A stretch of DNA of 64,000 bases, taken from the NCBI GenBank assembly GCA_024704765.1, contig JAKMXF010000365.1, positions 186,001 through 250,000 of the forward strand, read 5' to 3'. The translations under genes were made by a program, and so were the position numbers. This document shows, piece after piece, positions 3,522 to 41,959 of this stretch. Below the pieces are notes generated by a model. The model saw only the letters and a program-made list of their open reading frames with translations. It was not told where the DNA came from and did not search any database. The DNA is from Oopsacas minuta (lineage: Eukaryota; Animalia; Porifera). Positions within the stretch are counted from its first letter, which is position 1, and every line of letters starts with the position of its first letter.

Positions 3522-6500
3522 TTATAAAGGAAAATCCGGTGTAAACGCGCGTATTTCTGGAAATCTTTGTTTATACTTGTTGCTAACGTTGAAGTGATGG
3601 AATGAAGAAGGACTTGGACTAGTGGGTGGGTGCAAGAGGATCCCTTTGGAATTTACCCGCACAGGAAGCGGAGGAATGTTCAAATTTGTAATAGTAGAGT
3701 GGGAACGGGGGAGAGTTGAACTGGGGTATTTATTTTTAATTAAAGGTTCAGAAAATAAGGAATGAGTTGGGTGTTGGCTCCAATTTCTTGGTTGGAATGA
3801 GTAAGCTAGTGAATGGGAGGTTCCAATTGAGGGAGACGATTGCATATGAGAGGGCTTATAGCTGGATAAATTGTCCCGAGAGAACATATTGTGCCCGTTT
3901 AGTGGCACCTCATATGGCATAGCTGTAGGCTCCCAAAATTGCCTAGGGGGGGGCGATCCCTCATCCGATCCAAAAGTATTTGTTTCAGTTTGATGGTAGT
4001 CTAATTTCTTGAGTTTTCTAGCGTATATTGATATTTTAATACAGAATAAAGTAATGAGAACTCCCAAGCAGCAAAATAGAGTTGAAGACAGCAAAACTCC
4101 AACTATGAGATATTCTATGAAAATTGGAGGTAGCGGAATCAAAGGAAATAGATTGTCTGTCAAATCTACAAGCAAATATTGGGTAATAACATTGAAAAGT
4201 AAATTCCCAGGAGGATACACAAGGACACTGAAGTTCAAGGGTTTATCTATGTGCTTAGCAAACACAAACAAGTGTCAGTTCAGTAGCCATGAAGGACACA
4301 AAGTGTCGAACGTGGACTCCAATTAGCACAGGATCACTATGTTGCCACCCAAAAGAGTGCAACCCCATGCAGCTATAGTCAATTGACCACCAAGTGATGT
4401 ATGCAGCTAGGTCAGTATACTACACACTATAATTTCAATGTTATATACCTATTGGATCATCTGTTGTCATGGTAATTAGTGTTGTTGTATCAATAGCTGT
4501 TGTATTTATTGTGGGTGAAGTTATATTTGTAGAGTATAGAGTTCCATTGTTGGTAGAAACTGTTACTAAAATTAGAATATATAAATTTGATCTGAACACG
4601 ACACATTTGTGTAAAATTTCTTACCGTCTGGAAGTTTGTATTGTGGTGGACAATCCCAAACCTCTCCGGTAGTGTAATTGTATAAGAAATGATCACCACT
4701 ATAAATAGTAAACAAGTAAACAAACAAGTAAACAAATAGGTGAATATACTAACTAACCTTTTATTGACGTTATAAATAGATACACATTGTTGTTGTTTAC
4801 AACTGAATACACAATATGGATCCATTGATTCAACACATTCTCTATGGAATAGATACATTAAGTATTGACCAGATAGATTGACGAACTTGCAAGAGCTACA
4901 AACTTAAAATATAGCCTGTAAGTGTCGGGTCGTGTATTTAAAATATATACAAAATCAAACAAAAATAGCCACACATCTCTGAGATAGGAGACTACTTGTA
5001 CTCTTGTCCAAATATTAACTTACTCGGCAGAATTGTAGTTGAAACATGATTGGAGAGGTATTTTGTGAATTCCTGATTTTGTACCCACAATAATTCCTTC
5101 CTAGAAACAAATAAGTTTTGATATCCATAGTCCAGTAATGCATTAAAGAAAATCTGAATATTCTGCAATATTCGCTAACCTGAGATCGCTTTTGCATATT
5201 TTTGTATAACTTCATTTCTGTTACAAATAGTTCTGTTGTATCTTTAACCTAATTATATTAGTGTGCGTGAATAGGTGTGAAAAATGTATATGCATATGAA
5301 TAATACTCACTATCATTGTTGTTGATATCAGATGGGAGCTTGAGCTTCTGTGTGAATTGTAGTTAACACGATGTAGCATTATGTCAACTAAGATAAAGAG
5401 GTGAGTATCGTTGTTGACTTGTTTGTTTGTTTATTCGTGTGTTTATTAGTGTGTTTGTTTGTTGTATAATCACACATTTAACATACTTGTTGACTCATAA
5501 GATATAGCTAGAATAAACATTACTTCTGTGTAAACGCCATCAAATGAAACAACACTATCGACCACTATTTTCACAAACCTAAAAGAAAATTCATAATAAG
5601 AATTTGTGACACCATTTGTGACATTGAAACATTGCAATACATACTTTTGGTTGTTAAGGTGGAACAGGGGTTCAGGCTGATGAGCTTGCCTTACAGAAAA
5701 TTGCATAATAACATCCCTTCTTGCCTCTTCCGTAGTCCGGATAGGATCAGCTTCACACTAAAAGTAGCAAAAGATCACAACTTAATCCCTAATTATTCAT
5801 AAATAACTTACATTAATATCTCCTTTCTCAGAGCTGAAACCCCAGGAATACGCAGATTCTTCGGTAATGTATCTGCCGCGAAATGCTTTAACCAAGTCAA
5901 AGTCATTCTTATCAAATGTGTAAACACAAACAGCTGATCCAACAGGTCCGTTTCTAAATATGAATAAAATATGTAAATACAGTGTAACCTCCACACACGG
6001 GGCAGGACTCCGAAAAATATTCCCCCGTGTTTGTGGAGATTGATTTGTATGGGACTAGGAATTGGCTCTATTTATTTTTCACTCCGTTTCCACAGATCAT
6101 GGAGGTTTCAATTTATGTATTACAGCCTATGGGTTGGGAACAGCTGATCTAGGTGTTCTAATATTAGTGATAATCTAATTAACTTACAAAGGAGAGGAGA
6201 ATATAGCATACACCTGCTCAAACGGTAGTGTGTTATGTTCAAAAGCTCCAGAAAATTTGTATGTATCTTCTAAACAATTGAGAATAATATAAATAGTGTG
6301 AAGTGGGTCTATTTGACCCAAGGGTGTCTGGAATTTTAGCAAACGTGTGGAATGTGAAAATTCAAAAATGAAAGCGACTCACGTAATTCATTGTAATGGT
6401 ACGGAGGTGTTTGAGAGGTTTGTTGGTATACACAGCTGATTCTAGCTTTCTGGAAAGACAGGAAATGATTTTCCTCACCTCCAGATCCCAAATCATTCTA

Positions 6501-9500
6501 CAGAAAGCAAATATTATAAAAACAAATTCATTTTTTCCAATCAATGAATCTCCAATGACATAACTCCAATACACATGGTTCTATTCGTTGTATGAAAACC
6601 TCCAAAAGTAACACCTTTCTCGGTCCCCTACACACAATGGCTTGAAAAGTAAACACCTCTCATATGTGAACATTTTGACTGTTCCCAGGGTGTTTGCTTA
6701 CTGAAGGTTTTAGTGTCGTGACTGATAGTTAACGCTACAATGATATACAGCTGATGATTTCTCAATGATTAGAATAGAGGTTAATGTATGCGCGCTAAAT
6801 CAATTATCACATCTAGGTGTGAATTCGTACAACACGTATATTTAATTCTACTGCCAATTAGATTCTACATAAAAGTACATACCTTGCATATCCTAGCAAC
6901 ACGGCTATAAATCTGCACATTCTAAAAATAGATACAAAATGAAAATACGGAACAGAGCTCTGGATTGAATAATGTCAAATTACCTGTGATATTCGTGTGG
7001 ATACTTCGACTGCTTTTTCACGAAGAAAAATATATACAAAATTTCCTTCTTGATACATACTCACAACTTGCGCTTCTACAAAAGAATATTTGGTGAATAC
7101 GGAACCAATTTCCTTCCAATGTATTTCTAATGATAAATGAATATCTCTAACCGCCAAAGACAACCAAATAAGAACTGAAATTAATAGTTATTATTCTGAA
7201 TATTGCTGACTCCAAAGGTTCGTTGAAGACAAAGCAATGGAACAAATGAAAACCATAAACCCACAATTATTAATTGTAAATTTGCAATATGAACTATTAC
7301 ATTCATATGTGAATCTAACACGTCAAATATTATGAACTAGTAATGAGAATTTTAGGTAAGAGCTACAGACGTGAAAATTTCCATGTGTGTGGATCTTGTG
7401 AAGTCTGGCAACAGAATTAAATTTCTAAGCGAAACCTCCTAAAATATCTGAGATATGCGACAATATATATTCGACCAATAAAATTTGAATGTTGATGGTC
7501 CGCACAGTGAAAAATCAAAGCGTGCAAGTACGCACAAAAAATAACAAATTTCATTCACCGTTGAGCCAGAGAGAAGTCTGAAAAAATTTTCTTGTTCTTA
7601 TCAGCGAATCTGAAGAGAGAGGCAATAGGTGTTTACTGATGACGTAATCCTCTCCCAAACCTTCTTGCCTGAATGTAAAGAGGTCACCAGTGTCTAAAAG
7701 ATGAATATTTAAAAAAGCATCCCTTGAAAAATGGTAAGAGATATAGGCTTCAATTCGGTGTGTAAGTGTGAAGTGGCGTGATTGGGTAACAAAATTATCT
7801 AACAAAAATCTCTACAATTCTCTAAGAAAAGGTGACAAAATGTTTTGACAACTCACATTTGAGGTTTTACCAAGTATGTTATTCTATTGGTCAAATGAAT
7901 GTAGAAGTTTATATGACACGAATTCTAACACCTTTCTGAGAATGCTAATTGATATATTTTACTAAAATACTCATAAACACTTACTTGTAAACAGATCAGC
8001 TGACTGATACTGGTTCTCTGAAGATATATAATTATCTCCGTTGAATGAGTGTATAGCTTCGAAAGTGTTAACCTTATTAACCAAAAATATACATAAATGC
8101 AATACAAATATAGTGTCAAATTAATCATATAACTATCATGCTATCGATGACATAAATTGAGAAGAAAGTCCGCCGTCTAATCATGCAATAACGATAAATA
8201 GATTAGTAAACTGATCTAACATAACGCCACAATGATACCCAAATCCTGTGTCTACCGCATCAATATATCGCTATCAGCACTAATTTACATTAACGTATAC
8301 GTGCGTATATTTAATATTGAAATTCAGTGCTCATAAATATTTAGTTCGGGTTTATTGAGAAACTGGGAAGAGCTACAAACTTGATATTTGGTTTGAGTAT
8401 AGAATATGAGGTACCTAGGTAGTATTTTAAAAATCTATGAGAAATATCAAAAAGTCTCTGAGATAGGTGACAAAATATCTTGACCTATAGGAATTGAGTG
8501 TTTAACTGATTATCCAGCTGATAGTTATACTCAAAGCCTATCTGAGACTGAAAATTGATTGGCTTAGAGCATTGGTTCTCAATCTTTTTCTTCCGCGGAC
8601 CTCTTTGGTCCATTTTATGGGGTCTACGGACCCCTGCCAATAAACATAACGAAACATTTTAGGGCTGCGGGCCCCAGGTTGAGAACCACTGGCTTAGAGG
8701 AATACATTACATATGATTGAAATAATTTCTACATACAACTGATACGAAGTGCCCCGAGCGAGCTTTCGGGACACAATATGTTCGCAGTTAGCGCAGCGCA
8801 AGCAAGCGAAACGATCAGTTATTGCCTTGGAACTTGACTTACGTCTCTGAAACTGCATTGAGGGGAGTATGCATTAGTTGAACAAGTGAATATTGTTTCA
8901 TTTTGTCTCCTCTGTGTACCGGATAATATCTGGTGACTTGTTGGGATTAACATTATAGAGAAATCATTGTGACAATACTCCTAAAAGAATTTTCCTGATT
9001 TAAGTACAATTATTCGTTGTAAATTTAATTCCATACTTTAGAGTGTAACCTTAAATGCTATCCAATTTCCACAGCCCCTTATGTGGAGGTTACACTGTGT
9101 AAAGTTGACTCAGCTTAATCGGGGAAATTGGACAATCAATCTCCCCCGATTAAGCAAATCGACTGTCAAATAGCAGCAGTAATTAGCTGAGTAATATTGA
9201 ATTAACAATAAAGTTGGAATAATTAACTAAAAACGTTAATTAGATTAGTTCATAAGATAATACAGGACAGCTATGAATAATTACTTACAGATGGCCATCC
9301 ATTCCTAATACACTGATTGTAGTCCGAATCTGAAGGTGTTACATCCTATATAACATTATAATTATTAAATCAAAAATGAAAATACACTCAGCTCCCAACT
9401 CCCATTATATTGAAGGTCAAAGGACGGCAATAATTACTCAGATATACCTGATGTAATATTGTTACTGTTTGGAACCATATTTGTACAACTTCACACTTTG

Positions 9501-9700: not shown

Positions 9701-10043
9701 TGAATCTAATAGAAAGATTCCATAGCATATTTGAACTGATAAAAACCCTTTCCTCTTAAAATTCCATAAATTAGATTTCAATAGAATGAAATGCGATACA
9801 CATAAGTAACAATCATAGTGAATCAGAGCCATTATGTCTAGCGAAGTTACACTGAACCCTGGGGCAGATGATAATCAAGTAAATATAAGTAACCAGATAC
9901 TGCCAGTACATTTACGTAGTGATAATGAAGTGCTGTTGGGATGTATCTAGTCTATACACAGGAATGGATACTCCCTTAAAGCACTATACCTCAATACTCA
10001 TGAGTATACATAGTTCATAGACTTGGCTAGACAATATCTAGAC

Positions 10044-10098
10044 CAGAGATGGAACTGGTCAGCTTTTTCATGATCCGACCCGACCGGTTCCATCTCTG
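10044..10098. mobile_element. hAT-type MITE, 55 bp
   Basis: TIRs CAGAGATGGAACTGGTC / GACCGGTTCCATCTCTG, flanked by a perfect 8-bp TSD ATCTAGAC (10036-10043 and 10099-10106). Confidence 0.85.
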
Positions 10099-10932
10099 AT
10101 CTAGACTATAGCTAGACATCTGAAAATAGGGCGAATTGAATTGACTTTGCAAACTCAGGGTGTGAAGTAATTCAAATGAGTATTAGTTACACATAGCAAA
10201 AATGAATCAAAGGAACTGTATAGGGTAATCTTCAAATCTGATTGGTCAAAAGATTTTGGCGCCTTTCTCAGAGAGTTTGGAAGAGATCGGATAGATACAT
10301 GAGTAAGTTCTTGTATTCACTATAGTCCATGTGTTTACCAAATTTCAAGCTCCTAACATTTCCCAATTCTGAAAAGCATTCGTTGAAAATGTATCTAAAA
10401 TTCTAAGACTTCTTTCACATTTGAATAGCTAATAGCATATGAATGTATACAGACACACTGCTAGCCAATACAGAACTGATAAAGCCAAATAGAGATAATC
10501 ACAATTCAAGTGCTAATCAGAAACCTGTATTACCATTAAAGCTATTGAAAAAGATATGAATTTATGTAAATTCCTGAATTGTTCAGAAAAAAGCGCCAAA
10601 TGAAACCCTCCATAATTGCAGAGTAATTGTAACGGTAATAAGGATTTGACAGTTTGTAAAATAACGAGTTACGTTATCGTGTCAGAATTTTGAGAGTTTA
10701 AAAGTGTAAAAAAAACGCTAATTGAATTGATAAATCAAATGAGATCTTCTCGTTAACGAGGTGACAATCCATATATCGTGTTCATTGCCTTTAACTCACG
10801 AACCCACGTAAACCACTCTCATGTTTACAAGTCAACTCTCTTGAAAACATATCGAAGATATTAAAATATCAAAGACATATTACTGTAGTTAAGGAAATAT
10901 ATTCATTGAAAGGGACTGAAAATTATGTGCAA

Positions 10933-10973
10933 GTGACCGTTATACAGAGGTGGTCGTTAAGCAGGTTTGACTG
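10933..10973. mobile_element. One end of a CAGTCAAACCTG-family TA-flanked MITE
   Basis: GTGACCGTTATACAGAGGTGGTCGTTAAGCAGGTTTGACTG|TA is a near-match reverse complement of the element end at 15845. Confidence 0.65.
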
Positions 10974-13474
10974 TAGTCACAGTGTTTAAGAGTGTCAGAA
11001 AAGTGTCAGAAAAGTAGCAAATTGTGTCAGAGCTAACCAGTGCACACCGAAATGTAATTTGCTTTGTAATGAGAACTGTTCAATAACATTTTGAAATGCT
11101 TAAGTGCATAAAGATAAGTAAAGGCTTACTTGAAAATTAGAAATCTCTGTAAAATCTGAATTTATCCTCAATATCAAATTTCTAAGTGGAAATAGATTAA
11201 AACAATATACATCTGCACACATAACACACAAATAATGAATAGATTAGCATGTGATTAATATGAATATGTTATATGTTAATCAAAAGATAAGACAATCTTT
11301 CAATATATTAAATCAGTAATACATAAGTATACTTGGATAAGACATTGAGGCATGCCCGTGGGACAGCTACTGATCTCGTAACAATAATAAATAAACATTC
11401 GGTGAAAGACAAGTAGAAAGAACTCAATAAAATGAAGAGCAAGTCGACAGAATCTGTAATTAGATTAAGTAATAATTGAGTCTATGTGAAATTGCTTATC
11501 AAACTGTTCTATTCGTGCTATGTCTATACATTAATGCATACACAGTGAAATATACAGATTTGTACATTGCTAGCTTTCAATAGTTTCGGATTAGGCTGGG
11601 TATCTCGAATATAGAGGATATGTACGACTAAAACGTGGCGATATCACATTAAAAATATCCTTCCAAGTGCCCCAGATAATGGGAACAACACTTCCTATGA
11701 TAGAACATGATTTTGTCCCGGGTTTGCTATTTCAAACATACATTATACATATCCCATCTGCTACTTATGAATAATTAATAAACTGGATATATCATATGCA
11801 GCTGTCTGCAATTTTCTATTTTAAGCATATCAGTATTTATTGACACACAATATACTCTCATTATGGAAAATACCACTCAATTCATGCTAGACAGAATGGA
11901 ATACTATCGCATTTATCAAACTCCGCTGAGTCCGAAGATACTCGCAGGGCTTCGCTATTCCTGTAAACACAGAATAACTAGCTATAATGGGTTCCTTACG
12001 AATGGATCACCCAATTTAGAAAGACATAAAGTATTCAAACAAGATAGAATCCGCCGAAACCCGTTGATATAGCCATAATGTTTCCTTTTAGAATATAACA
12101 AGGGTAAATATTTTGTTGTTTCATACAAATAAACAAACAAACAAACAAACCTTGCGCCAACAATCACGTTACTTTCTTCAAGAATAATTCTATCTAGAAA
12201 ATACACAAATTAAAATACTAAGCTGAATTAATCACTTTAATAGCCACTCCGTCTCGATATGGTGCGGGAAAATGGAACGCTTCAACTTTGTTTTCAACAC
12301 CCTTGAGTAAGGGTTTGTTGCAATTAACCAGAACCAATTAACACTATTACTTGGTTAAGTTCCTGATGGAATGAGTGGAGTATACTGTCTCAGATTTTTC
12401 CAATCTTAACATTTTGAAAATGAATGAAAAATTTTATGGAATTTGAAGTAGAACACATAATTAGACATTTCTAGTCAAGGTGTTAGAAATACAAATAATC
12501 AAAATTGATAGTTATGACTGAACGTAAAACATCACAGGAGGCGAATTGGGTGTGACAGGCACATACTGCCTTCGAAAAATCAAAGTTGTCACAAACAACT
12601 TACCAGGAGATGTAACAGGGTAGAAGAAATTTGCATAAACAAGATCCAAATATACAAACACACAAATATATCTCAAAATAAACATATCAACAAGCTATTA
12701 TCATAAATATCAACTAGCAAGTAAGATACAGTTTATATAGAAAGTTAGTGAACACATAGGCACATATGTCTGTAGTAATGTATTAGCTAATAATTACACG
12801 CATAATATGGATACAGTAGTAATTGTTGGATTTCTAATTGACAATGATTCGGCTGTTGGAATATATGTGGGGGAAATGGTTGCTGGGGTGGTGAGGGGTA
12901 CTGTCTGGGTATCGACCCCCGGGGAAGGAACGGTAGGGGTGCAGAGGGGGCTTAAAACCCGTTCCTGTGTGAGAGAATGGTTCATGAGGTCATGTTATGA
13001 CTGACAAAAATATTTGTATTATCAAAAAGATTCAATTTTCGTAAAAATCGCAATTCTGGAAAATACATTTCTAGAATATTCGGGGCAAAGTCCCGCAGAG
13101 ATAAACATTCAACAGCTTGAAGCGTTCCCAAAGTCTTAAAACCATGAATATGTATTCATAATTGGCATTAAATGTCGAGAACCTATAACAACAAAAGAAA
13201 AGTGATCGTTGAAGTGGCATAAACCACCTAGCAAGTGATGACTCAAATTCCTCTGAATATGCAAGAGAAAGCAATTAAATTATAATGTTTGTAAGGAGAC
13301 GTGGTAATCATATACGTAATATATAAGGCAAAATACATAGCAACCAATTGGGTTAATGTTATGCATAAGATTTATCAATACGGTTAATTACTTGCCAATC
13401 AAATCACATTATCAATCTTCTGGAAAGCAAAGTAATAGAAATTATTATGTGAGAATTTTCTTGATTATCAAAGA

Positions 13475-13865
13475 TCCATATCCGATATATCCCACATAGT
13501 TCCATATCCGATATATCCCACATAGTTCCATATCCGATATATCCCACATAGTTCCATATCCGATATATCCCACATAGTTCCATATCCGATATATCCCACA
13601 TCTTTCCATATCCGATATATCCCACATCTTTCCATATCCGATATATCTCACATAGTTCCATATCCGATATATCCCACATCTTTCCATATCCGATATATCT
13701 CACATAGTTCCATATCCGATATATCCCACATAGTCCCATATCCGATATATCCCACATAGTTCCATATCCGATATATCCCACATCTTTCCATATCCGATAT
13801 ATCCCACATAGTTCCATATCCGATATATCCCACATCTTTCCATATCCGATATATCACATCATAGT
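13475..13865. repeat. 26-bp minisatellite, about 15 copies
   Basis: Unit TCCATATCCGATATATCCCACATAGT with variants ending CATCTT or carrying CTCAC. The repetitive minus-strand ORFs here are by-products of the array. Confidence 0.97.
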
Positions 13866-14053
13866 TCCATAAATTCTAGCCAGAGAATTCCTAAAATAAT
13901 ATTCAAATTTGTTAATAGAAGCACCATGGATTCAGTCCAATATAATTCTAAAATAGATTTATTGTTAACTGTCGCATTTTTGAGTGTTATGTCCCGCCAA
14001 AAAATAAATCAAAACATAGCAAGTGAATTGGAATAAATAAGAATGTTTGAATT

Positions 14054-36320: not shown

Positions 36321-39300
36321 ATGTCTGATCAAATATACAAACAGGACGATAATAGCGAGGAGGACGAGAAGCCCAAAGAAGAAGCAGAGGTTAGTGCTTC
36401 ATATAATTCTGTAAAGTCTGTTATAAATATAAATTTATCTGAAAATACAACAACAAAACTTATTTACAAAATCTGAATAAAACTATAAGTGATAAACAAA
36501 TGATTTAATTGGTCAGTTAATCGAACCAATGATCCTCTCTACATTCCAGGTTCCATTCTTTCTCACATAACCAGCACCATTCCAATTGACACACCCCAAC
36601 ACTACACGTTATATGAGAGCAGCCCCCGTCTCTCTCTACAGGAGCATTACATCCAGGGCAACTCTTAATATTTGAAGATTCTTTCCAATCTATTAAAATA
36701 CAAATGTACAGTGAACTCTGGTTATAACGAAGTGTCTGTTTTCATTATAATATATATCGCTTTCAAGCTATAGGGGGTAAAGAATCACTTCGTTATATCC
36801 CGGGGGTTTACTTAATTACTTGATTCGTAACAAGAGACACATTCTAACTTACCCTGACTCTCTTCGCTGCGATCTCTTCCATCTCCTCCAAATCTCCAAC
36901 TGCTCCTAATCGCACTCCCCTTCAAATTAACCCCCGCAACACCTCCTCTAACAGATAGAGATCTCTCACAAACTCCGAAATGTGCTCTATCCATGCACTT
37001 CCGGCAGAACATATGACAGCAGGCCTCGCAAGTAATTAGTCTATCCTTGGTACCCGGAATTACCCCCTCGCCACATCCCACCGCCGGACAGAGAACTCCT
37101 CCTTCCGCCAGGACGAACTCCTCGGCCGCGAACTTATGTAGTCGCTCGTATAACTCATCTCCTACAACCCTGAAGTGCTCTGCATCTGTTATGAGAGAGT
37201 TCGGACATCCAGCCGGGCATCCCAGGCTATACCCTACACTACTTTCATATCTACAGAATAGGCTGTTAGGAATTTAAGTTATGCAATGAATGTGTCGCAT
37301 ACCTGAATAGTCTTGACACTAGATTAACTCTAACATACTCTGTAAAGCAAGGTAGACATGTAGCGTGTAAGCTAGTGCATTCAAATACCATTAATCTGTC
37401 TGGAGACTCTGCGCATATAATACATTCTACTGATCTCTCATTCATTTTAACCTAGAGGGATATAATCTATTATATTTGCAACTTATGACAAAATGTATTG
37501 AGGAACTGGTAAGAGCTACATAGAATAAAATACGTCTAAGAAGATATTCTAATATCAAAGCGAAATCATCCCTAGTCTCTAAGAAAGGTGACGAAATGTT
37601 CTACCCAGTTACAGTACACTCAATTACCTGTTTGAGAGGTGTAGCAATACTCTCTTGTTGAGGATGATTAATACAATTAAAATAAAACTCTGCTCTAATT
37701 CCTTCACATTTACAAGAGACGCAAGAACCTGTTATTACATCTCCTGTGACGTCATTCCAACATGAGGGGTCACATGACAGGGTGAAGTGATTAGACTTAC
37801 AATTCCAGCAGCGCACAAGCAGTTTCCCTGCGAAATAAAATAGGTAATATAGAACAAGCCACTCATCAAAAATTATGTTTTGTTAACACCCTTTGGAATT
37901 TATCACCTCTTGTAATAGTGTTACACACATCTCTACAGAATACAGAGAAATATCTCCGTTTAGATTTCATAGTCTCATAGCTTATCTGAGAAGTGTGAAG
38001 TGAGAATTCTCCTAAATGTTCATAAATATGCTCTGACACCTCTGAGACTGTGTCTGAATCAGCCACGTACCGTCTGTAGAATATACAACACATTTACTTA
38101 CAGTTCAATTAAAAATTGAACCAATGGTCTGTATGGGGTAATAATCACGGTAACTATGGTATCTGGAATGTTTAATGAGAACTATTAGTTGTTACCTGAA
38201 TGAAAAGTCAAACACACCCTCTGATCCTTTATCCCAATGTGACGTCATTGGTACATAATACTCCCCCTCTAGCTCCACGTGGATACCAGAAGGGTCCAGG
38301 GGCCCTGCGGACATTGGCATCTGTATATCGTATCCTCTAGAAGGGAGGGAAGGGGACAAGGACCCATACACCCTAAGTTTCGTGTTGTTAACCCGTGGCA
38401 TAGTGTTAGTAGCCAGCACACAATACAATGTACTGAATTCAATCATGTGTAAATCTCTCAATTTTGTTTTATTATCAATCTCTTTGCCAAGGAATATTAG
38501 TTTATTAGGGACTCTCCCTAACTGAGAAGTAATTGCCTGTTTCAATTTGAATACATTCCAATCCCACTCTACCATCACTGGGATTCTACCGCCAGATTCC
38601 TTGTTCGTATAATATAGCCAGATTACTGGCATTTATCTGAAATGAATTGTTTACATTATTGCACTAAGTAACACCTCAAGTTGTTGTTAGTTCCTATATA
38701 ACACTCTCGTTGGTAAGTACTATAACTGGACCCATGTGGTCCTTTGGGTGTTCCCCTATTTGCAATATAACTTGCTAATAAGCGAACTCCACTGTAAATA
38801 CTTTGTATAATTTCAATGTAATTAGAGAAATACTTATTTACATTTAAGAGTTAATTAAAAATATAAACAATTAGTAAAGTTAGTATTACAATATTAACAC
38901 CTAAATATATACACCAATCACACTTCTATAAATTATCAGTTTATTAATGGATTAATAGCTGTTGATTCTGGTTAATTTCCCTAGCAACGAAAGGGTGGTA
39001 AAGCAATTCGTTTGCATAAGGACGAGCTATCTTATCATGAGTTAGACACTGGGATACAAACTTTTTGCATTCCTGAGAAATCTCTTTGGGTAGGACAGGT
39101 TCAGTCTTTTCGGACGCTATTTTAAACATAGCAGCCATTGGTTCCAGTTTATACCAGGGAGGTGATGTAGTGAGCATTTCTACGATGGTACAACCTAGAC
39201 TCCAGATATCTGCCCTCCTCCCGTAGCCGTCCCCCTTGATTATTTCAGGTGCCATCCAGTAGGAGGTCCCGTGTACCGATTTTATGTTCGTGTACTTGCC

Positions 39301-41959
39301 AGTGCCGGATAATAGCGTTCCAAGTCGCTTGCTCGCACCGAAATCTCCGAGTTTGATATCAAGGTTTTTGGTCATTAGAACGTTTGCCCCTTTAATATCG
39401 CGGTGAACTATTGATTTAGAATGCAAGTAGTGAATTCCTTCAAGGATTTGTCCCGTGAATTTCAGAGTCTTCCTTTCAGGCAGGGCCCCTGTTCGCCGGA
39501 TATAGGCGTGTAGCGACCCCCCAGGCATATACTCCATAAATATTGATACACACGTGTCCGTCTTCTCAATCCCTAAGTATGTTATAATCCTGGGACTACT
39601 GAGGGTTTGCAGAGCTTGTATTTCTCTCTCAAATGAGTTGATTTCTTCTTTATTAGAGAGTTCCTCTGAAATAGGAATCTGTTTAACAGCCATTTCTCGC
39701 TTTGTCTGGTTGTCTATTGCTGTGAATACGCTCCCGAATCCTCCTATAAGCACACACGAATAAAAAGATACAGTAAATGCCGGTTATAAGAACAGGTATT
39801 GCTACTCGCAAGGGGTGTACTCATAACCATCATACACTCTATTTGTATGAATTTATTATCGTTATTATTGAAAATATTTCCTGAATGTTATCAGGGTAAC
39901 TTGGCAACCTAGACAACCAAATGGAATGTCGGTTACAGGCAATCAAAAGTAAAATTATGTTAACTACCTGATCCAAGGAATTTCCCCTTCGTCCATTGGT
40001 TAGGTACTCCTACAAGAGGCTTCGTAACCATGGTAAATACGTCTTTGTCCTTCCTTCTGTCAGAAGGATTAATAGCAGAGAATGAATCTTCATCTGAGAC
40101 AGTAACTACTGATATAGGAGTCTGTTTATGAGTGCTGAAGGTACTGATGTGTGTGTGATAATCAGTTTCTTGTTCCGATAATCCCGAACTATTTGTGGTA
40201 CTGTCTGACCCAAAAGAGCCCCCAGAGTCTCTGTCTGGAGGGAGGATCCCCTCCGGTACGAATCTGCCCCCTCCAAGCCCTTCTAGATTAGGTGTAAACC
40301 CTCCTAGACCGGCATCCGGAATAAACTCGCCATGAGGCTTTGAAGAACTCGCAGACTTTGAGAATCCTGAAAATGAGAGTTTGGGCAGTGGTGCTCCCTC
40401 TGGATAAGACTTGTGCACCTCTCCAGGGGTAGATACGTAAATGGGTTGAAGGAATTGACTCTGAGAAGAAAGAATCGGTAAAGATCGACGAGGTGAGTGT
40501 TGTATGCTATTCTGAGACAGTTCTAGACCATCCGGCACACGGGGTGTTAAAATTATAGAAGGGGCTGATTTGAGTTCATCTGGACCCATCCTTGTTATGA
40601 GGGAGTCGATCTCTTCTTGAGAATATAGTGGGTACTTCCTGTTTCCCTGTATCCAAATGATGCTCAAGTTTGGACCAAATTTATCGTTCACAAAACGGAC
40701 AATTTCTTCATAACGAATCGGCCATTTTACGTAGAAAGCTCTCTTCTCGCTTGCGTAATCGAATTTGACAAGAATTTCACTTCTCGGTTCATTGCTGGGA
40801 GTGGGATAAGCTATTTTTAGCCTTGCGAGTTGTTCTGATAAAGACATTAGTAACTACAGTCTACATGCTCTAGAGATAACTCATATTATACACAAATACC
40901 AGTATATCCTAATTAGCTAGAAATATTCATACCTTTTGCAAGTTTATAGACAAATCTACACAAATTTTCCGTGTTTACATTATCAAGTTCTTGTAAACAA
41001 ATTTGTTTACATATTTATTTATAAAAGAATTGGCTATGTGATTATTTACAACATTTTGAAGCGCAGTAAACAAACTCTGAATATTGGCGAATAATCTGTC
41101 CAAACAGATGATACATATCTTATGAACTTAGATACCTTTGAGAAATAGCTTATTATCTCCAGAAATAGGCTCTATGTTATCAACAACATATCATGAATAC
41201 ACAGGAATTCAGTAACACAATTAAACATTTACAAAAGAAGTAAGAATCGGAGCTATTTATGTTGTTAGTTACAGAAATTGGTAATAGGAATGCATAATAG
41301 AATGGGTTAAAAGTGGTATATATGAACCACAATCTGCATGATTACCTGAATTACTTGTAACCTAACCTGCCCAATAACCTAATTTCCAAGAATAATAATC
41401 TAGCAAACAGACAGATGGTCCTATTTCTTATTAAACAGAACGCGTACGAACAGAGCATGTGTGTATTATATATGAGTAAGGTTCTAAGATATTTGTGTGT
41501 GTATTTGTCACTAATATACTTAAAATGGATACTTCTATTAGATATAAATTCTCCTATTTTGCTAAATGTAATATGTCATACAGCTGAGAATTGAATTCCG
41601 AATGACTCACAACGTTTCTAATGAGAAATCACATGCAATAGCACAAAATTCTCGGGGGACATTTCTAACACCCTATTATTATAATTTGATCAGGAAATAT
41701 GTTACAAACCTATTCTATATTCAAATAACAGGTCACCCCCGATGAAGATGAGGACGATCCTATCGACCCCAAAGATGTCCTCACTGAGAAATGCTCAGAA
41801 ACTATAAAATGTCAAAACCTCAAATCAGTGATGGACGGATGCACCGAGAGAGTTGAATCACACCCCGGTACTCACGAAGTGTGTACTCAGGAATTATTCG
41901 ATTTCATGTCCTGTGTGGATTTATGTGTGTCTAAACAATTATTCAAATACCTCAAGTAA
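36321..41959 (+). CDS. UQCRH: Cytochrome b-c1 complex hinge subunit; exons 36321-36389 and 41732-41959
   Basis: Exon 2 encodes DPKDVLTEKCSETIKC...CTERVES...CTQELFDFMSCVDLCVSKQLFKYLK* (QCR6 pattern), begins after AACAG and has no usable upstream ATG. The acidic phase-0 exon MSDQIYKQDDNSEEDEKPKEEAE|GTTAGT is the best partner. Exon 2 is near certain; the link to exon 1 is inferred. Confidence 0.8.
36517..38632 (-). CDS. PRKN: Parkin RBR E3 ligase; exons 38196-38632, 37907-38073, 37628-37827, 37303-37451, 36853-37250, 36517-36689
   Basis: Ubl (IFLGKEI), RING0 (FSVFCRDVC...GKLLVRCWNC...PSCWND...AEFYFNC), RING1 (CIICAE...CLPCF...YSLGCPAGCPNSLI), IBR (GGVLCP..GCG...FCRKC), RING2 (KSCPGCNAPVERDGGCSHITC...EWCWLC...EDHWFD). 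All splice phases are consistent. Confidence 0.96.
36709..36813. mobile_element. TA-flanked pogo/Tigger-type MITE in the last parkin intron
   Basis: TA|CAGTGAACTCTGGTTATAACGAAG ... CTTCGTTATATCCCGGGGGTTTACT. Confidence 0.7.
38944..40847 (-). CDS. MAP3K2: MAP3K2/3 (MEKK2/3)-like kinase, PB1 + kinase; exons 39968-40847 and 38944-39743
   Basis: PB1 ILVKFDYASEKR. The splice completes GSG|GFGSV; also MAVKQI, HRDIKGAN, DFG, GTSYWMAPE, ADIWSLGCT..EMLT..PPW..LEPMAAMFKIA. Confidence 0.93.

Follow-up and report, generated by a model that had tools for sequence, protein, structure and literature searches.

Parkin and a MAP3K2/3-like gene lie antisense within the predicted 5.3-kb UQCRH intron of the glass sponge Oopsacas minuta

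In the glass sponge Aphrocallistes vastus, 2,432 genes, or 12.4% of all genes, are nested within other genes, and many of these nests are conserved (Francis et al. 2023, PMC10282587). The locus described here, from O. minuta, shares the main properties of those hexactinellid nests: the guest coding sequences lie wholly in a host intron, the surrounding genome is compact and its introns are otherwise short, and the arrangement is conserved across glass sponges (PMC10282587). The combination of UQCRH as host with a MAP3K2/3-like gene and parkin as guests was not found in the literature searched. It is nonetheless a good example of an arrangement already known to be very frequent among glass sponges and does not represent a new phenomenon.

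The window, by which we mean the whole stretch of DNA analysed, comprises 64,000 nucleotides of the O. minuta genome. The predicted features of the nest are as follows, with a slash marking splice borders here and below.

36321-36389, plus strand: UQCRH coding exon 1, ATG and 22 codons, acidic N-terminal tail MSDQIYKQDDNSEEDEKPKEEAE; donor GAG/GTTAGT
36390-41731, plus strand: UQCRH host intron, 5,342 b, phase 0, GT..AG, with two minus-strand guest genes
36517-38632, minus strand: parkin gene (coding sequence with stop), six predicted coding exons
~38632-38196, 38073-37907, 37827-37628, 37451-37303, 37250 (or 37262)-36853 and 36689-36517, minus strand: parkin exons
38944-40847, minus strand: MAP3K2/3-like kinase gene (coding sequence with stop), two predicted exons
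40847-39968, minus strand: MAP3K exon 1, PB1-like N-terminus and linker
39743-38944, minus strand: MAP3K exon 2, kinase domain
41732-41959, plus strand: UQCRH coding exon 2, 75 codons and stop, entire hinge domain

The host is most easily recognized from its second exon. This exon matches the Pfam UCR_hinge model (PF02320) over profile positions 1-65 of 65 (E 6e-22, 78 bits; cut-off 27.2) and was the single locus recovered by a genome-wide search for that domain, at 77.3 bits. It is also 88% identical to P0001, a protein of 97 residues from a Trinity transcript of a related species. Judged by these matches, 41732-41959 is UQCRH (QCR6), the hinge subunit of respiratory complex III. The first-pass annotation had held that this exon has no start of its own, and this is borne out: the reading frame is open from 41729 only, directly after a TAA, and enters the exon through the acceptor ..aacag/G. 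The first in-frame start within the exon, at 41828, would cost the protein its first conserved cysteines.

The missing start had been placed in an acidic, phase-0 exon at 36321-36389, which implied a 5.3-kb intron. In a loose tblastn search of the window with P0001, only exon 2 stood out from the noise. BLAST statistics do not suit a sequence as short as exon 1, and we therefore used a ranked enumeration of candidate exons instead. For each reading frame running from an ATG to a phase-0 GT between 20000 and 41731 (n = 339), a score was computed against P0001 residues 1-23. The exon at 36321-36389 ranked first of the 339, scoring 34 where the next independent site reached 14, and an in-frame TAG lies 15 b upstream of it. 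Exon 1 is a short, low-complexity sequence; together with the beginning of exon 2 it makes up a D/E-rich, acidic N-terminal region ahead of the hinge. The two exons, read separately, give 23 and 75 codons, as compared with the 97 residues of P0001. UQCRH is very small, with about 98 codons and one intron, so that guest DNA makes up more than 90% of its span.

For the guest genes, Pfam and structure searches were run exon by exon, on separate pieces. Parkin splice sites were picked by reading frame and consensus, and the resulting pieces carry, in order, a Ubl domain (Pfam ubiquitin, 4.4e-6, 26.8 bits; cut-off 25.4), the parkin-specific RING0 (zf-RING_12, 5e-15, 56 bits), RING1 (zf-RING_14, 1.3e-11 and 1.6e-11; 45.1 and 44.9 bits), IBR (IBR, 8.8e-7, 29.3 bits) and RING2 (IBR_2, 2.7e-15, 56.7 bits). 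The RING2 piece reads CPGCNAPVERDGGCSHITC...CREDHWFD, followed by the stop; it thus ends in DHWFD, probably the conserved C-terminal motif of parkin, and the cysteine following GG in this piece is presumably the catalytic one, as in human parkin. With this set of domains, the gene predicted at 36517-38632 is parkin, an RBR E3 ligase with Ubl and RING0.

In vertebrates, PRKN is a very large gene that lies head-to-head with PACRG. The O. minuta gene shares with it the order Ubl, RING0, RING1, IBR, RING2, but its coding sequence spans only 2.1 kb, its introns measure 40-176 b, and it sits inside the UQCRH intron, 311 b downstream of the MAP3K gene. The contrast with vertebrates drawn at first reading holds for gene neighborhood as well. 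In a search of the genome RING0 matched at this parkin alone, making it a single-copy gene on contig C365, and PACRG is found on a separate contig, C144. A second parkin copy adjoining PACRG was ruled out on the same two observations.

The second guest encodes a protein kinase (Pfam Pkinase, 2.8e-69). Compared with solved structures, its kinase domain was closest to MAP3K2 (1.3e-78, 267 bits), followed by MAP3K5 at 176 bits. Residues 21-89 of exon 1 matched the PB1 domains of MAP3K3 and MAP3K2 only, with E between 2.5e-4 and 1e-2. The Pfam PB1 model gave no match to this exon at E up to 1, and the PB1 assignment therefore rests on the PDB matches. A PB1-like N-terminus followed by a C-terminal STE11-type kinase domain suggests that 38944-40847 is a gene like those of the MAP3K2/MAP3K3 (MEKK2/3) subfamily.

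Both guest coding sequences, parkin at 36517-38632 and MAP3K at 38944-40847, are on the minus strand and lie wholly inside the UQCRH intron at 36390-41731. They are arranged in tandem, 311 b apart with parkin downstream, and the MAP3K start codon is separated from UQCRH exon 2 by a gap of 884 b. The two genes look intact, and their coding sequences fall entirely between the host donor and acceptor, in agreement with the first-pass description of two complete antisense genes. The host intron was also described as far longer than any other, and this holds among the introns modelled here, those of the parkin and MAP3K genes measuring about 40-224 b. The intron itself has GT..AG borders, its flanking exons have homologues in relatives, and the equivalent exons are joined in the transcript of one relative. 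From this homology and that transcript, we infer that O. minuta splices 36389 to 41732.

The genomic locus of P0001, in the same species as the transcript, was reached via the open reading frame of MAP3K exon 1. At this locus (L005), positions 14115-14047, which are followed by GTTAGT, encode an exact copy of P0001 residues 1-23, and residues 24-97 are encoded from 9297 onward, preceded by ..caacag. The intervening host intron is 4,749 b long, has GT..AG borders, and holds both MAP3K (10001-11720) and parkin (11915-13978). The two UQCRH exons are joined in the mature RNA of this species, and the nest is thereby proven there at the RNA level.

A check of synteny in related species had been proposed, and it returned the same UQCRH/MAP3K/parkin layout in all six of the related ENA samples. 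Homologues of exon 1 ranked first by a wide margin at L002, L004, L006, L007, L009, L010 and L014. They were always located between the parkin stop and a CHMP2-like gene, and the donor GAG/GTTAG was kept across their alignment. The proposal that 36321-36389 is the UQCRH start exon is thus upheld both by its rank in O. minuta and by homologues in the syntenic slot of relatives. At L003, the most distant locus, the score-based search for exon 1 placed chance matches inside the CHMP2-like gene on top; a positional candidate at 15316-15233 (GAG/GTGAGA) shows weak similarity. Host introns range from 4,749 to 7,156 b at seven related loci, the L003 value being based on this tentative exon 1. The flanks of the nest, which include genes for kinesin-17, MFS, Omp85, CD225 and the CHMP2-like protein, are as conserved in gene order as the nest, whose conservation does not exceed background microsynteny.

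Taken together, these data make it highly probable that O. minuta UQCRH consists of two coding exons separated by a 5,342-b intron, in an ordinary hexactinellid nest that is older than the divergence of the sampled hexactinellids. We propose that exon 1 supplies the start codon and the acidic tail and is spliced to exon 2 across the phase-0 intron, within which two complete opposite-strand genes, first MAP3K2/3-like and then parkin, lie in tandem. The persistence of the nest since the sampled hexactinellids diverged is probably structural in the main: any rearrangement having one of its breakpoints in the intron would destroy the single-copy host, and microsynteny is retained in glass-sponge genomes anyway. 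We also infer no dedicated regulatory coupling among the genes of the nest.

An unlikely alternative is that the nest is functional, with transcription of a highly expressed UQCRH running antisense through parkin and MAP3K, or with the parkin 3′ end overlapping UQCRH exon 1, so that respiratory-chain and mitophagy-ligase expression are reciprocally tuned by interference or antisense RNA. The retention of the layout in 6/6 related samples is compatible with this, as is the short distance from the parkin stop to the exon 1 donor, 68-166 b at every locus measured. In O. minuta this distance is 127 b, and the parkin 3′ end may therefore reach exon 1. The parkin strand of both L002 and L005 carries an AATAAA at a distance of 11 b from the exon edge, such that parkin transcripts probably end within the antisense of exon 1. 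In O. minuta, however, parkin has an ATTAAA 8 b past its stop, and transcripts ending there would fall well short of exon 1. The argument from conservation is offset by the flanking genes, which are equally conserved in order (related loci; PMC10282587). Moreover, with 12.4% of A. vastus genes nested, functionally suggestive pairings are expected by chance, and since glass sponges nest genes throughout their genomes, the prior for coupling is low. The stronger claim, that the nest has been selected as a regulatory unit in which antisense read-through from UQCRH, parkin 3′ overlap, or both couple respiratory-chain expression inversely to the output of parkin and MAP3K, is more doubtful still. 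If true, OXPHOS biogenesis and mitophagy would be hard-wired to each other in an early-branching animal. As it stands, functional coupling between the nest genes has no support, and the pairing of parkin with UQCRH is a curiosity.

The model of a distant first exon can also be set against one in which the UQCRH first exon lies near exon 2, between 40850 and 41731 and head-to-head with MAP3K, and the open reading frame at 36321 is a chance or unrelated one. The 884-b gap could hold a bidirectional promoter, and a UQCRH start in this interval had been named at first reading as the competing possibility. All 13 candidate exons in this interval that run from an ATG to a phase-0 GT are hydrophobic, however, and none scores above -4 against the N-terminus of P0001; a nearer first exon was rejected accordingly. 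In addition, the equivalent gap is skipped by the transcript of the L005 species, and in most relatives a homologue of the 36321 exon occupies the same slot, leaving this reading very improbable. Least probable of all, to the point of being negligible, is separate transcription of the UQCRH exons and their joining in trans, with no host intron in the strict sense: long-read leader sequences in A. vastus, interpreted as trans-spliced leaders, are discussed in PMC10282587, but the strand, order and canonical GT..AG borders kept in relatives are predicted by cis-splicing and not required by trans-splicing.

The main value of reading UQCRH as the host of a long intron lies in annotation. In the published O. 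minuta annotation, RNA-seq was mapped with an intron limit of 5,000 b (PMC10280926), which the 5,342-b UQCRH intron exceeds, and only 83 nested genes are annotated in this species (PMC10282587, Table 1). The UQCRH nest may therefore be unannotated in the O. minuta gene set. Given this limit and the few nested genes reported, such host genes can be missed or truncated, which matters for a genome in which core genes have been discussed as 'missing'. O. minuta UQCRH can be modelled only where nested genes and an intron of 5.3 kb are permitted, and what is gained in practice is a corrected model of the gene for a core subunit of the respiratory chain. The nest also provides a clean, deeply conserved case in which to study how gene order is locked by nesting.

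The exon at 41732-41959 matches the complete UCR_hinge profile (PF02320; positions 1-65 of 65, 78 bits, E 6e-22) and is the sole match to that profile across the Oopsacas minuta assembly, which identifies its gene as UQCRH, the complex III hinge subunit. The first-pass annotation held that this exon has no start of its own, and its frame bears this out: it opens at 41729, right behind a TAA, with an acceptor, ..aacag/G, preceding the exon. The earliest in-frame start is a GTG/ATG pair at 41828, and starting there would remove the first conserved cysteines; an upstream phase-0 start exon is therefore required. The resulting gene model, with its two guests, is as follows.

36321-36389, + strand: UQCRH exon 1, an ATG and 22 mostly acidic codons, then GAG/GTTAGT
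36390-41731, + strand: UQCRH host intron, 5,342 b, with the coding sequences of two guests inside
36517-38632, - strand: parkin coding sequence, six coding exons with frame-consistent predicted splice sites
38944-40847, - strand: MAP3K2/3-like (MAP3K) coding sequence, two exons and a 224-b intron
41732-41959, + strand: UQCRH exon 2, 75 residues and a stop in translation

Identification of exon 1 relied on P0001, the one protein returned by a word search with exon 2, to which it is 88% identical over that exon. P0001 is a complete ORF of 97 residues from a Trinity transcriptome of a relative in EukProt, and its residues 1-23 read MSDSILKHEAADGDEDNQNENGE; exon 1 of the window translates to MSDQIYKQDDNSEEDEKPKEEAE. 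Every phase-0 exon running from an ATG to a GT on the + strand was enumerated over 20000-41731, 339 in all, and scored against these 23 residues. The exon at 36321-36389, singled out earlier as the best acidic first exon, ranked first of the 339 with a score of 34, and the next independent site scored 14. The frame is closed by a TAG 15 b ahead of its ATG. A nearer first exon, in the gap between MAP3K and exon 2 (40850-41731), is rejected, as all 13 candidates there scored -4 or lower against the P0001 N-terminus.

The guests were searched exon by exon for domains and homology. The parkin pieces match, in order, ubiquitin, zf-RING_12 (parkin RING0), zf-RING_14 (RING1, split across two exons), IBR and IBR_2 (RING2), and the last terminates in ..REDHWFD followed by a stop; the predicted introns are about 40-176 b, and this is the sole RING0 match across the assembly. 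The best solved relative of the MAP3K kinase is MAP3K2 (267 bits; 176 bits for MAP3K5). The only matches to residues 21-89 are PB1 domains, those of MAP3K3 and MAP3K2, although the Pfam PB1 model gave no match. Both coding sequences fall within the intron, on the strand opposite UQCRH, as had been proposed. MAP3K and parkin stand in tandem, 311 b from stop to start (38633-38943), a spacing similarly tight in relatives (about 195-450 b between called ORFs).

The genomic DNA of L005 (ERZ23490157, scaffold_244) encodes P0001 exactly. Residues 1-23 lie at 14115-14047 of this locus, followed by GTTAGT; residue 24 onward begins at 9297, behind ..caacag, and exon 2 shows no difference from residues 25-97. 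Since P0001 is encoded in two pieces with splice borders, the assembled mRNA joins exons 4,749 b apart. Between them, on the strand opposite UQCRH, lie two guests.

L005:10001-11720: MAP3K
L005:11915-13978: parkin

The nest is therefore demonstrated at the RNA level in this relative of O. minuta. About 157 b downstream of the genuine exon 2, this species carries a second, divergent copy of it (L005:8701-8919, - strand; also L014:1580-1798), which is absent from the other related loci compared. The L005 copy is 65% identical to exon 2 of the window; the frame of the second copy is open, with one conserved cysteine substituted (..TLKGRNL..). A tandem duplicate in decay and an alternative terminal exon are both conceivable.

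Searching with the MAP3K exon 1 ORF (295 aa) yielded six related ORFs on ENA contigs, which were fetched; the related loci derive from six ENA samples. All six contigs share the nest layout and the order CD225-like, UQCRH exon 2, MAP3K, parkin, CHMP2-like (Snf7). In L002, L004, L006 and L007, as well as in three additional contigs (L009, L010 and L014), the top first-exon candidate occupies the equivalent slot, carries a GAG/GTTAG-like donor and scores 34-121, against 11-21 for the runner-up (161-268 candidates per locus). In L003, the most distant locus (MAP3K exon 1 only 58% identical), the first exon is a positional candidate only (15316-15233, MSSLEL.., GAG/GTGAGA). The host intron measures 4,749-7,156 b in the seven related loci measured, compared with 5,342 b in the window. 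Taken together, the nest is real and conserved, and the structure first proposed is correct.

Two samples each hold two contigs with the complete nest: ERZ25072740 has L006 (323x coverage) and L010 (266x), which differ slightly in MAP3K exon 1 (290 vs 293 aa) and in the end of UQCRH exon 1 (..PEAE vs ..PETE), and ERZ25072730 has L007 (2x) and L009 (294x). Haplotypes, two species sampled together or a segmental duplication could account for these pairs.

The arrangement is a standard nested-gene configuration. The UQCRH promoter most likely lies within the ~650 b that separate the CHMP2-like stop (35672) from 36321; transcription from it would cross both guests in antisense, the intron would be excised by ordinary cis-splicing, and parkin and MAP3K would be driven by their own promoters inside it. 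Aphrocallistes vastus has 2,432 nested genes (12.4%), many of them conserved, and microsynteny among glass sponges is extensive (Francis et al., PMC10282587); the UQCRH nest is a further example. Because flanking gene order in the related loci is conserved as well as the nest itself, its conservation needs no special selective explanation, and a breakpoint inside the intron would presumably also disrupt the single-copy host gene.

The suggestion that the nest couples complex III to mitophagy is unsupported and unlikely. One suggestive detail is the short distance from parkin stop to host donor, 68-166 b in all seven loci measured (36390-36517 in the window, and its equivalents in L002-L007). 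In L002 and L005 the parkin strand carries an AATAAA 11 b away from the edge of exon 1, so parkin mRNA may end inside UQCRH exon 1 in antisense; in the window, an ATTAAA 8 b past the parkin stop would terminate parkin early.

In relatives, UQCRH exon 2 has an Omp85-family ORF (SAM50-like, mitochondrial outer membrane) a few kb away, placing SAM50-like, UQCRH and parkin genes within ~10 kb.

L002:4265-4789: Omp85-family ORF
L004:5421-5906: Omp85-family ORF
L006:5533-6066: Omp85-family ORF
L009:1-396: Omp85-family ORF

In a genome so densely packed with genes, this clustering of three mitochondria-related genes could easily be a coincidence.

In vertebrates, PRKN is a giant gene head-to-head with PACRG. 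The contrast drawn earlier with that pairing holds for O. minuta, a glass sponge (Hexactinellida), in which parkin is on contig JAKMXF010000365.1 and PACRG on another contig, C144 (246110-246661; apparently one uninterrupted frame of 251 codons; ParcG 279 bits).

G+C is ~36% in the window; the published genome comprises 61.46 Mb in 365 scaffolds at 36% G+C (PMC10282587 Table 1; PMC10280926). Its annotation lists only 83 nested genes (PMC10282587), and the RNA-seq used for gene prediction was aligned by TopHat with introns capped at 5,000 b (-I 5000; PMC10280926). The 5,342-b intron exceeds this limit, so UQCRH junction reads would have been discarded, and it is for gene annotation that the nest has practical worth.
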